This document shows positions 40,111 through 48,210 of a stretch of 64,000 nucleotides of DNA, piece by piece; position 1 is the stretch's first letter, and every line of letters starts with the position of its first letter. The position numbers and the translations under genes are program-made. This stretch comes from Perna viridis. Taxonomy: Eukaryota. Under the pieces are notes generated by a model. It was not told the origin of the DNA. It searched no databases and worked only from the letters and a program-made list of their open reading frames with translations. The stretch spans positions 39,623,743-39,687,742 of the forward strand of contig CM074515.1 of the NCBI GenBank assembly GCA_037379345.1, given 5' to 3'.

Positions 40111-40871
40111 TATCCACTACTACCATACGTACTGTATTAATTTATAACCTTAGATTTAACGAACGAGGAGGAATCATCTGGTCTGCCAAATCTTAATTTC
40201 ATACAGCCTAGCTGGCCGAGTGGTCAAGGGCGCTGGACTTGGTGCTGGCAGTGTTGCTATAGATGTCACAGCGGTACGAGTTCGAGTCCCGAGGAGGGAA
40301 CGACCAAAAATTTGCAGCGCAAATCATTTCTTTACGTTTACATATCTTTCCTGTATCAAATTGATCCGATGGAGAAGTGTAGCGGATTCGTCACATTCTG
40401 AGACACACACACACACACATATATATATAATCAAGTCTAATTACACCCCAACTCTACAATCGATGCGAGGTTGCAAATTTGCGATTAAATTTGGTCGCTC
40501 CCTCAGCGGGATTCGAATCCCTTCCCTTCTCTGACATCTATGGCAACACCACCTGCACAAAGTTCAACACTCTAGACCACTCGGCCAACTTGGCTATAGA
40601 TAATATATATAGAAAGGTCTGAAAACTTCCGAACGATGTTACAATTGTCAAATTTAGTGGCCGAGTGGTCTAGGGCGCTGGACTTTGTGCAGGCGGTGCT
40701 GCCATAGATGTCACAGCGGTACGAGTTCGCAAATTTGACAGTTCTAACATCGTTGAGAATTTTCAGACCTTTCTATACGTTTACATGTACATTATCTTCC
40801 CTTATCAATTTGATCCGATAGAGCAGTGTAGCGAATAGAACTGTCAAATTTGCGAAGCATAATTTTCGGTC
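40107..40871. repeat. Cluster of tRNA-headed repeat units in alternating orientation
   Basis: Approximately 40107-40404(+), 40455-40600(-), 40609-40655(-), 40656-40838(+), 40836-40871(-). Separated by (CA)n/(TA)n tracts or microhomology junctions. Confidence 0.85.
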
Positions 40872-40890
40872 AACTAATGACCTCCATCAG
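40864..40890 (-). ncRNA. Partial hammerhead-ribozyme-like core
   Basis: CUGAUGGA-GGUCA-uuagu-UGACC-GAAA downstream of the GIY-YIG fragment. Stem III and the cleavage site are missing. Confidence 0.5.
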
Positions 40891-41400
40891 TGCTTTAAAC
40901 AAACTGAGTGTGTATGAAAATAAATGGTCTGTGAGCACAACTCATTACCTAATTACATTAATACATGTAAGGTATTTAAATTGTATTGACAGTAAACAAA
41001 TATTTTGAACATTGTGGTTTGGTAATCTGAAATGTTGACTCACAGGCAGTAAAGGCTTTTTTGTTAGGTCGCTCCTGTGCCCGTTTAAGCTCTTGTGAAA
41101 AAGCTGTTAGGGTTCGCCAACATATTGGAGACCGCAGATGGGACAGTGAAGCAAATATATCAGATTAGCGCTCTTGCAGTGCACGTTACAGAATAACAGA
41201 ATATTTTGTTGCTAGTGAATAATGACGAGTGGTGCATTTGTTTGCAACATTTACACTGTTTGTTACCTCAGGAGCGATTCTTCTCTGGAGTCAAGTTGAG
41301 CTTAAATATTTCAGCCCTTAAAAGCAGACTACGCAAACTGTCTGACTGTCTGAAGCTAATCATAGTTGGTTCGGGAAAGACCTTGGATAGACTTTGATTC
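40864..41400 (-). mobile_element. Penelope-like element 3' fragment: Zn-linker, GIY-YIG endonuclease, 3' UTR
   Basis: KVFPEPTMISFRQSDSLRSLL...NKQCKCCK...CKSANLIYLLHCPICGLQYVGE...NGHRSD...PVSQHF, with stops and frameshifts. Not in the ORF track. Confidence 0.85.
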
Positions 41401-44584: not shown

Positions 44585-45559
44585 TATATATATATATATA
44601 TATAAACGTCTCAGAATGTGACGACTCCATTCACCGCCTGCACAAAGTCCAGCGCCCTAGACCACTCGGCCAGCTAGGCTATATAAAAATATAGCTTTCG
44701 CTGGCCGGGTCATTCCTCCTTGTAGGATTAAACTAGGGCTGTATCTTTGTGCAGGCAGTGTTGCCATAGATGTCACAGCGGTACGAGTTCAAGTCCCGCG
44801 GAGGGAACGACCAAAAATTTGTCTAGCAAATTTGAGAGTTAAAACATCGTTGGAAATTTTTCGGACCTTTCTATATATATATTAATATTATATATTAATA
44901 TATATAGTCTCAGAATGTGACGACTCTATTTGCTACACTGCTCCATCGGATCAAATTGATACAGGGAAGATATATAAACGCATAGAAAGGTCTGAAAAAT
45001 TCCCAACGATGTTAGAACTGTCAAATTTGCGATGCAAATTTTTGGTCGTTCCCTCCGCGGGACTCGAACTCGTACTGCTGTGACATCTATGGCAACACCG
45101 CCTGCACAAAGTCCAGCGCCCTAGACCACTCGGCCAGCTAGGCTATATAAAAATGTAGCTTTCGCTGGCCGGGTCATTCCTCCTCGATCCGATGGAGCAG
45201 TGTAGCAAATAGAGTCGTCACATTCTGAGACGTTGTATAACATTGATTTGTTGTGACATGCATCATTAATTTGATCCTCTATCCTACATATTAACATCTA
45301 AATGAACTGTCCCGTACCACCATACATCGTGTACTAAGTTACAGCCCTAGATTAATCCTACGAGGAGGAATGACCCGGCCAGCGAAAGCTATATTTTTAT
45401 ATAGCCTAGCTGGCCGAGTGGTCTAGGGCGCTGGACTTTGTGCAGGAGGTGTTGCCATAGATGTCACAGCAGTACGAGTTCAAGTCCCGCGGAGGGAACG
45501 ACCAAAAATTTGCATCGCAAACTTGACAGTTCTAACATCGTTGGGAATTTTTCAGACCT
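44585..45559. repeat. Cluster of young tRNA-headed ~410-bp units, circularly permuted and inverted, embedded in (TA)n
   Basis: 44585-44745(-), 44745-44872(+), 44907-45186(-), 45187-45559(+). A-box 45411-45421, B-box 45478-45487. Confidence 0.9.
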
Positions 45560-45696
45560 ATATATAAATATTACTCACCTTTTTCTGTGTAATCAACTGC
45601 GATCGAAGAATTTGAATAAAGTAATTATATATATATGTTATATATATATATATATATATGTATTTTACAAATGTGCATTCTAAAAGGCCCTGTTAT

Positions 45697-46850: not shown

Positions 46851-48210
46851 TTTCTGTTTGCTATTGATTTAATGTGACCTGAATCGTTAATTTGATCCCT
46901 AGAAATGGTTAACTGAAATAAATTACGTAAAGGATCAGATTTCAAAATGATATTGTTCACTAGTAGGCCATTGCTTACTTAGAGTGTTCTATCGTTACCA
47001 CTTTTTGCTATCGTCCTAAAGTGTGAAAAATATGTTATTCAAGATTATAAATGTGTAAACTGCAGGACTTCATTTAATTTTAAGCTTGCAAATATCAAGT
47101 TAACTTTTCTGACTATCTGTAATGTGTTTTAGACTACATGTTAGCAGTGTTGATTTCGCAACTTCATGAAATTGTCTTTTGTTACACAAGTTGAAAAGGA
47201 TATCAAATCTTAAAAAAAAAAATTTCTGTACATACATTTATGTATTATTATCTTGCATAGCGCCGACTGTTTTTTTTTCTTTTTCTGTATGCCCATATTT
47301 GTTTATTCGCGTTGTACCAACTAGTTTTTCATTAGAAAAATTAATACAATTTTAGTCAATGCCTTTAAGGGACGGAGCTATCTGTACTTTTACTCAAGTT
47401 ACAGTTTACGTTTTTGAAAATGCACCGTCATGTTGTTATTTTACTGATGTCTTTACCAACGGGAATATACAAGACATTTTATAACATATTATGAGCATCT
47501 GCGGTAAAAATTAAATCACATCCGAACTACATTATCAATTCACTGAGTGATTTTTTTTCAAGAAATGTTAAGACTATGGCAGATTGAAAGGAAATAGATG
47601 ATGACAGGGATAATACAAATGCCATTATGAATTATAATGTAACGAAAATGGTTTCATTCATTCAAACTACCAAGTTAAATAACAAGTTCTCTTTCACGTT
47701 TACTTCAGCACACAGTACTGTTGTAAATTTTATTGTACCCGCTCATAAAACTCGACACAGTTATCTGTCCTGTAGATCAATTGAATTTACTGAGTATTTA
47801 CAAAAAATAGATAGCACCCCGCGACATATATCTCGACTATTTGAAATCGACCTGAATATCGTTTTGGTCTTTTGGCGGGTTTAAGATATACTCTGCAACT
47901 TGGTAGATATTCCTTTCAGAGCCTGGATTAACCCAGGTTAAAAGTCTGTTTGAATTACAGTGGCAACAAGTTAAAACTCTGACATCCATTGTGTTATACA
48001 GAAATAAGACTGAAAGATGTCCTTTCAAGGTTAATATCCGGAGACATAGTAATGGCACAAGGTGTGCAGCATTACGTTTTATACTCACAATATGTTAGTA
48101 GGGGGGAGGGAAACAATACTTGTGACAACACTTGTGTCAAATAGTGGTTTGAAAACTCATTAAAAGTCTTTGACAAAGTCGGGAAAAACGATATGAACTA
48201 AACCCGTTCG

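Follow-up and report, generated by a model that had tools for sequence, protein, structure and literature searches.

A 409-nt-period repeat of Perna viridis with permuted, head-to-head copies in (TA)n microsatellites: a probable non-autonomous retroposon of Penelope type

Within a 64,000-nucleotide stretch of Perna viridis DNA (hereafter the window), positions 44585-45559 hold several pieces of one short repeat which meet in opposite orientations, carry tRNA-type promoter boxes and begin and end at different points of the same sequence. This leads to the question as to what kind of element leaves such permuted and inverted copies, and which enzymes put them there. A reading made from the sequence alone proposed a retrozyme-like unit, transcribed by Pol III into a multimeric or circular RNA and retroposed by Penelope-like machinery into microsatellites. 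The components of this proposal fared differently in the computational analysis reported here, which covered the locus, the remainder of the window, the genome assembly and the resident Penelope-like elements (PLEs).

The repeat cluster and its relatives in the window

BLAST comparison against the window revealed five pieces of one repeat with a period of 409 bp between the TA-rich tracts of 44585-45559, joined to one another head-to-head and tail-to-tail across TA repeats (Table 1). The DNA of the window is AT-rich, with a GC content of ~32%. The monomer is obtained by adding to the plus-strand copy a 36-nt stretch that is carried only by the minus-strand copy, and its length of 409 bp agrees with the ~410 nt estimated previously. 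The pieces at 44632-44753 (minus) and 44745-44874 (plus) meet head-to-head with an overlap of 3 bp, while the copies at 44907-45186 and 45187-45565 meet in the same manner at 45186/45187 with a gap of 0 bp, the outer ends of this latter pair adjoining TA-rich repeats. Furthermore, the 46 bases at 44907-44952 recur as an inverted copy at 45186-45231 with 100% identity (BLAST against the window). Hence, one and the same segment forms the 3' end of the minus copy and the 5' start of the plus copy, as had been suggested.

No poly(A) was found at the copies of this locus and no TSD was discernible, TSDs being unreadable inside microsatellites; the gapless junction and the flanks confirm the earlier description of head-to-head joins that lack both features and of copies that end in (TA)n/(CA)n. 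The unit has no open frame of more than 80 aa, as judged from a trimer. Positions 44585-45559 are best explained as a group of clustered retroposon insertions whose period is 409 nt.

Table 1. Features of the repeat unit in the window, and genome-wide matches of unit 20-mers (unit positions refer to the 409-bp monomer)
Feature	Window positions	Strand	Unit positions	Remarks
Diverged relative	30157..30223	-		74% identity over 70 nt; more canonical B box (GGTTCGAATCC)
Solo copy, head to terminus B	34990..35162	-	~205-379	86% identity
Older subfamily copy	40107..40404	+	118-335, then 373->45	83-86% identity; ends CTGAGAC beside (CA)n(TA)n
Mosaic of six further unit pieces	40474..40871	.		Both orientations; includes head-to-head pair 40655/40658
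(TA)n microsatellite	44585..44604	.		Target flank beside 3' terminus A; from sequence and flank classes
Short unit fragment	44605..44631	-	22-48	Ends CTGAGACGTT beside (TA)n
Unit fragment, leader and A-box region	44632..44753	-	~144-265	
Unit fragment	44745..44874	+	250-379	3' terminus B (TTCGGACCTTTCTAT) beside TA-rich repeat
TA-rich repeat	44875..44906	.		Separates two 3' termini; tail-to-tail gap 32 bp
Unit copy across monomer junction	44907..45186	-	175->409->45	3' terminus A (CTGAGAC) at 44907
Unit copy	45187..45565	+	1->373/379	3' terminus B (TTCAGACCT) abuts ATATAT
AGAC motif 1	45228..45231	+	42-45	Just upstream of 3' terminus A
T5 run	45394..45398	+		Just upstream of A-box region; potential Pol III terminator
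A-box-like motif TGGCCGAGTGG	45411..45421	+	225-235	Exact match to TRGCNNAGTGG
B-box-like motif AGTTCAAGTCC	45477..45487	+	~291-301	1-2 mismatches from GGTTCGANNCC
T5 run	45548..45552	+		2 nt before terminus-B AGAC; potential Pol III terminator inside the unit
AGAC motif 2	45554..45557	+	368-371	Just upstream of 3' terminus B
20-mer			5-24	5,187 genomic matches
20-mer			60-79	3,045 genomic matches
20-mer			120-139	3,189 genomic matches
20-mer, leader			184-203	4,654 genomic matches
20-mer, A-box region			226-245	6,607 genomic matches
20-mer			340-359	8,526 genomic matches
20-mer			388-407	5,681 genomic matches

Pieces of the same family were detected by BLAST at 34990-35162, at 40107-40871 (eight pieces), at 44601-45565 (the five described above) and at 46863-46898. 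The assignment of all pieces in the window to one unit family is accordingly correct for those at 35002, 40107-40871 and 44585-45559, but not for the piece at 30150, which is a diverged cousin (74% identity) belonging to another subfamily. An older unit subfamily, represented on the minus strand by 40474-40609 with a tail continuing to ~40420, ends in ...TTAGACTTGAT(TA)n.

Two further observations concern the surroundings of these pieces. Within 40836-41389, unit fragments are fused to a minus-strand piece of PLE family A that is truncated at its 5' end (83% identity; 40857-41016 and 41071-41389). Sequence of the PLE hammerhead region, GACCGAAAATT, gives way at ~40871 to unit sequence whose usual form is GACCAAAAATT, which looks like a template switch at a microhomology between PLE RNA and unit RNA. 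The window also contains 151 N at 27496-27646, either an assembly gap or a masked stretch.

Permutation, termini and insertion targets across the genome

A search of the organism's own assembly (723 Mb, 46 contigs) returned 2,403 first-look candidates, among them dozens of full matches to positions 1-373 at 96-98% identity. Nearly every full copy among the 30 best full-length loci is preceded or followed by an extra, in-register partial monomer (for example 214->409, 1->409 or 1->53). The longest tandem among the 40 best-scoring loci measures ~2.6 monomers, and the unit family is therefore not a satellite. Copy number was estimated by counting unit 20-mers in the whole genome with up to 2 mismatches (Table 1), for which reversed-pattern controls gave 0-3 matches; it lies between 3,000 and 8,500 per segment. 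The counts step down past position 379 and once more past position 53, indicating two 3' termini, and they fall towards the 5' side, indicating 5' truncation. The junction 20-mer (44-63) was matched 1,280 times (controls 16 and 10), which is an undercount owing to a frequent variant with a 1-nt insertion at this point.

These counts also bear on the sequence that precedes the tRNA-like head, here termed the leader. With 4,654 matches for the leader 20-mer (184-203) against 6,607 for that of the A-box region (226-245), ~70% of head-bearing copies possess the leader, and the unit is hence not an ordinary head-first SINE. The observation that copies carry sequence upstream of the head consequently extends well beyond the window, and the possibility, raised with it, that most copies start at the tRNA 5' end does not hold. 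Likewise, permutation is a property of the family across the genome and is not peculiar to the 44585-45559 locus, permuted and partial-tandem copies being seen throughout, both among the best loci and in the 20-mer counts. With thousands of copies of this architecture in the genome, the pattern lies well outside what chance would produce. Assembly is difficult where inverted and tandem repeats are complex, and an assembly error, a segmental duplication or a satellite expansion could in principle produce such a pattern at a single locus. A local artefact of this kind is hardly credible, however, as the same architecture recurs at dozens of independent loci on many contigs, as junction k-mers occur thousands of times genome-wide, and as the family was found in contigs of independent sequencing runs from nine studies. 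A side observation from these runs is that X9 (organism B), a run that bears the label of a second species, contains 44% of the unit words sampled, so that near-identical copies occur under another species label.

The anatomy of individual insertions was examined in 101 chained segments from ~299 kb. This sample is biased, as 29 of the loci were picked because they contain a full match to 1-373 and 30 because a PLE lies close by; the 20-mer counts and the loose ends of DNA-run contigs are free of this selection. The 3' ends fall at positions 40-54 in 30 of the 101 segments and at positions 364-392 in 38, corresponding to a terminus A at ~45-53 (after CTGAGAC) and a terminus B at ~373-379 (after TTCAGAC). 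Of these 68 canonical 3' ends, 55 (81%) adjoin (TA)n with n of at least 3, as compared to 3.5% of random positions, and five adjoin (CA)n or (GA)n. The 5' ends of the 101 segments are scattered, with clusters at ~204-231, ~373-409/1 and 56-58. When DNA-run contigs were placed on the natural dimer, their (TA)n loose ends lay at exactly termini A and B. The motif AGAC is present in the monomer only at 42 and 368, and at both places a terminus follows 1-11 nt further on. The most extensive TA-rich patch of the unit (204-217) never serves as a 3' end in the 101 segments, which implies that TA microhomology alone does not set the termini.

Head-to-head pairs are a prominent feature of this sample: 24 such pairs take in 48 of the 101 segments. 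The two arms of a pair, both of them 5'-truncated, are separated by -7 to +10 bp, and their outer 3' ends lie inside a microsatellite at canonical termini. Furthermore, 32 of the 101 segments are longer than 409 bp, the longest measuring 866 bp. The notion of 5'-truncated, inverted copies inserted in microsatellites has thus been borne out, with fixed 3' ends, head-to-head pairs and (TA)n, or rarely (CA)n or (GA)n, at the insertion site.

Could such copies be the product of a DNA transposon? A non-autonomous rolling-circle element of the Helitron or Helentron type, whose tandems would arise by read-through of its terminator, would be in keeping with head-to-tail tandem copies and with insertion beside A/T-rich sequence, and Helentron-borne satellite-like repeats are known in molluscs. 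Against this origin, which we regard as highly improbable, stand the contrast between scattered 5' ends and fixed 3' ends, the lack of a 5' TC, of a 3' hairpin-CTRR terminus and of Helentron terminal inverted repeats, and the frequency of head-to-head, 5'-truncated pairs joined at microhomology. In addition, the genome-wide 20-mer counts display no fixed 5' boundary.

tRNA-type boxes, transcripts and the ribozyme question

The A-box-like and B-box-like motifs of the unit (Table 1) start ~65 nt apart, which, at the level of motifs, is the spacing of a tRNA; in other unit copies, the B box reads GTTCGAGTCC. At the unit segment, ARAGORN reported no tRNA at its default setting and only a '???' tRNA at a threshold of 75%, and Rfam gave no match to a tRNA with the region, the natural dimer or the segment alone. 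A genome pattern search for class II tRNAs returned only variants of the unit. Of the degenerate tRNA-like head with Pol III boxes that had been proposed, the boxes are retained (the A box being exact and the B box near), but neither ARAGORN at its default setting nor Rfam recognises a tRNA. Judged by its sequence, the segment is 'tRNA-like' solely through these boxes and a D-arm-like stretch, and the boxes are best read as a putative inheritance from a class-II-tRNA-derived SINE ancestor.

Several side observations were made in the course of these searches. Applied to the whole genome, the tRNA model gave 47,015 first-look candidates. The genome contains large tandem arrays of tRNA genes with periods of ~390/700 bp and 682 bp, as well as an array with a 1,087-bp period that harbors a class-II-tRNA-like 20-mer (G000:C6:28992243-29010160, G000:C8:20315829-20356301 and G000:C6:6655338-6790213). 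Within the unit, positions 184-236 (window 45370-45422) are predicted to form a hairpin of -27.4 kcal/mol, in which the leader pairs with the start of the tRNA-like segment and the A box. This predicted hairpin may be what remains of a former head-to-head junction that was captured in the master copy.

The presence of A and B boxes invites the view that the unit is an ordinary tRNA-derived SINE, moved by a microsatellite-targeting LINE, with inversions arising by twin priming and tandems by repeated hits or unequal recombination. Fixed 3' ends combined with 5' truncation fit this view, simple-repeat tails are frequent in SINEs, and tandem-like and palindromic SINE structures have been reported in bivalves (PMC11481361). 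The fall of ~30% in copies from the A-box region to positions 184-203 would, moreover, fit some head-first copies. The explanation nevertheless appears unlikely in view of the leader found upstream of the head in ~70% of head-bearing copies and of the seamless monomer junctions, in which neither a TSD nor a microsatellite intervenes. The inverted pairs, to which nearly half of the segments belong, have canonical termini at the ends of both arms. Finally, a census of repeats that abut (TA)n, described below, yielded no LINE with a matching tail, but only PLE termini and one unclassified family.

The second question raised by the boxes is whether they drive transcription of a multimer. Each monomer contains two T5 runs (unit positions 207-211 and 362-366), so a box-driven Pol III transcript should stop before terminus B and should not span the monomer. 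These runs, together with the position of the leader upstream of the head and the limit of ~2.6 units on tandems among the best-scoring loci, leave the suggested Pol III multimeric RNA unsupported. The whole monomer is represented in contigs of putative RNA runs, whose label was guessed, roughly in proportion to its abundance in DNA. The depth profile of these runs roughly follows that of the DNA run, giving no sign of a discrete small RNA or of a start site, and the assembled contigs carry no information on ends, strand or circles.

As regards ribozymes, a motif search revealed the hammerhead core CUGANGA on neither strand of the unit, and no Rfam ribozyme was recovered from the region, the natural dimer or the tRNA-like segment at E<=10. 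The minimal hammerheads of the resident PLEs also escape Rfam, even at E<=1, and hence only the motif search argues against a minimal hammerhead ribozyme (HHR) in the unit. On these grounds, the retrozyme and circular-RNA parts of the sequence-only reading are unsupported. They would have a Pol III multimer cut, circularised and copied in rolling-circle fashion by a PLE reverse transcriptase (RT), which would yield permuted copies of more than one unit. Such a scheme would agree with the fact that copies cross every monomer position seamlessly, which makes the template periodic, with the A and B boxes, and with the location of some 5' ends just past the 3' termini (56-58, 373-389 and ~401-1). 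Indeed, animal HHR retrozymes are PLE-linked tandem units of 170-400 nt (PMC7229834; bioRxiv 10.64898/2026.07.22.740005). We consider it quite improbable, however, as the unit is devoid of a CUGANGA core on either strand and of a ribozyme family at E<=10, contains two T5 runs per monomer, does not exceed ~2.6 monomers at the 40 best-scoring loci and has no detectable tRNA fold that processing enzymes might act on. The putative-RNA contigs give no signal of circles either, although contigs cannot show back-joins.

Resident Penelope-like elements as a probable source of enzymes

PLEs are known for partial tandems, for adjacent inverted and 5'-truncated copies and for a bias towards microsatellites, and non-autonomous derivatives of them have been described (Craig et al. 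2021, PMC8557442). A Pfam profile search of the genome detected at least 486 GIY-YIG candidates, of which ~30 loci were sampled. Two families, A and B, dominate the sampled PLE loci, and both insert into (TA)n. Family A possesses a C-terminal GIY-YIG domain and includes one intact ORF of 896 aa with RT and GIY-YIG; the resident PLE protein clusters with animal PLE-type proteins. The 3' end of family A reads ...CCTTTAGACTT(TA)n and that of family B ...TTTGACAA(TA)n. Copies of family A form tight head-to-head, 5'-truncated pairs, as do those of the unit. Furthermore, 8 of 19 (TA)n-inserted PLE copies have unit copies within ~100 bp of their 3' end, mostly tail-to-tail across a leftover microsatellite.

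A census of repeats abutting (TA)n with n of at least 4 produced five recurrent repeat termini, namely termini A and B of the unit, those of PLE families A and B, and that of an unclassified family X. In each of these five termini, GAC is present in the final 10 nt before (TA)n, as opposed to 9.4% of 160 unrelated flanks. In an end-anchored alignment of 26 nt, terminus B of the unit resembles the PLE-A terminus with p=0.0025 and terminus A with p=0.009. Apart from the final ~26 nt, the unit has no significant homology to the 3' UTRs of the sampled PLEs, and the classical proof of partnership by a shared tail is therefore weak.

Some further features of these repeats were recorded. Minimal type I hammerheads were recognised by eye in the 3' UTRs of families A and B (CUGAAGA ... 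GAAA; in family B CUGAAGA...GAAA-GUAC-UU, with GUAC as a palindromic loop) at L057:1890-1935, L046:1905-1950 and L061:4470-4510 (minus). The sampled PLE-A copies L038, L041, L042, L052, L055 and L060 carry ~28 extra bases at element position ~2550, in the GIY-YIG region, relative to the intact L061; either a retained mini-intron or an indel could account for the difference. Family X ends in ...TTATTTAGACGATT beside (TA)n (L006:~1911, L046:~2592 and L048:~2327), and over its final 26 nt it is similar to the PLE-A terminus (p<0.0005). A Naiad-type PLE was considered as a partner and rejected: the single Naiad-like family seen ends in ...GATTACTCTTTCA and has no (TA)n target. In this family, GIY-YIG lies N-terminal to RT (L062, G000:C6:47134000-47143900; L063; L064), and it forms a 5.1-kb head-to-tail tandem with 99.5% identity between units.

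Of the origins considered, we favor the view that the unit is an abundant, young, non-coding and non-autonomous retroposon which is probably copied by a Penelope-type mechanism. For the part of the earlier proposal that invoked Penelope-like machinery, the architecture and the (TA)n target, both as in the resident PLEs, speak in its favor, while the likeness of the tails is confined to ~26 nt. Under such a mechanism, a GIY-YIG endonuclease would nick both strands of a (TA)n tract, and each 3'-OH would prime cDNA synthesis at an 'AGAC + 2-8 nt + UA' site of an RNA that exceeds one monomer in length. Joining of the two cDNAs at short microhomologies would then give rise to head-to-head twins. 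The enzymes would likely be supplied in trans by a resident PLE with a C-terminal endonuclease, either family A with its intact ORF or family B, since these share with the unit the same microsatellites, the same (A)GAC-NN-(TA)n end and the same head-to-head structures. As to the templates of more than one monomer, transcripts that arise from partial tandems already in the genome, by read-through or by Pol II, would be likelier than Pol III products or ribozyme-made circles.

A more far-reaching proposal, which we put forward tentatively and which is more doubtful than the Penelope-type mechanism itself, is that a ribozyme-free element with a Pol III-type promoter serves as the main non-autonomous passenger of canonical, hammerhead-bearing PLEs, with reverse transcription starting at an internal 'AGAC + 2-8 nt + (UA)n' of a multimeric, possibly circular RNA. 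If PLE RT does start at the AGAC sites of the unit, these two sites would reveal the minimal cis-signal for PLE priming, which is undefined for any PLE.

PLEs are the least understood major class of retrotransposons. It is unknown how they build tandems and inverted twins and how their RT recognises RNA, and there is no in vitro system (Craig et al. 2021, PMC8557442). With thousands of young copies, two 3' termini tied to AGAC, and a target and architecture that match those of PLEs, the 409-nt unit may offer a compact natural substrate with which to define the priming signal and to learn how tandem and inverted structures originate. It follows, too, that an element with tRNA-type boxes need not act as a LINE-dependent SINE, which matters for the annotation of invertebrate repeats.

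Several known systems resemble the unit in part. The Sm-alpha repeat of Schistosoma is reportedly SINE-like, ~330-400 bp long and tandemly arranged, with A and B boxes, and is in these respects similar to the unit; it is also said to contain an active hammerhead, of which the unit has none. Classical tRNA-derived SINEs, including those of bivalves, share with the unit the boxes, the fixed 3' ends flanked by microsatellites and the occasional tandem or palindromic structures (Martelossi et al. 2024, PMC11481361). Unlike them, the unit has an internal head and seamless tandem junctions, around half of its segments occur in inverted pairs, and no LINE tail or TSD was found. Animal non-LTR retrozymes are likewise tandem and non-coding (Cervera & de la Pena 2020, PMC7229834; Li, Clavereau & Pollet 2026 preprint), and, at 170-400 nt, AT-rich and linked to PLEs as their non-autonomous partners, they are close to the unit in these traits as well (PMC7229834). 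HHR retrozymes are, indeed, regarded as passengers of PLEs (PMC7229834; bioRxiv 10.64898/2026.07.22.740005). The defining features of retrozymes, however, are a type I hammerhead and circular RNAs (PMC7229834), whereas the unit has no hammerhead core.

In the literature searched, no description was found of a PLE passenger that lacks a hammerhead and carries tRNA boxes. Parallels are provided by MRC1 and other non-autonomous Chlamys elements of Chlamydomonas, which, like the unit, are short and non-coding and have no canonical hammerhead (PMC8557442). The non-autonomous PLEs of this alga also share with it the pseudo-LTRs, head-to-tail multicopy arrangement, 5' truncation and microsatellite bias (PMC8557442). 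They have clear 3'-end homology to their partner, while the likeness of the unit to PLEs comprises the last ~26 nt. In contrast to the Chlamydomonas elements, the putative partners of the unit are hammerhead-bearing animal PLEs with a C-terminal endonuclease, and the unit itself has A and B boxes of tRNA type as well as two alternative 3' termini in every monomer.
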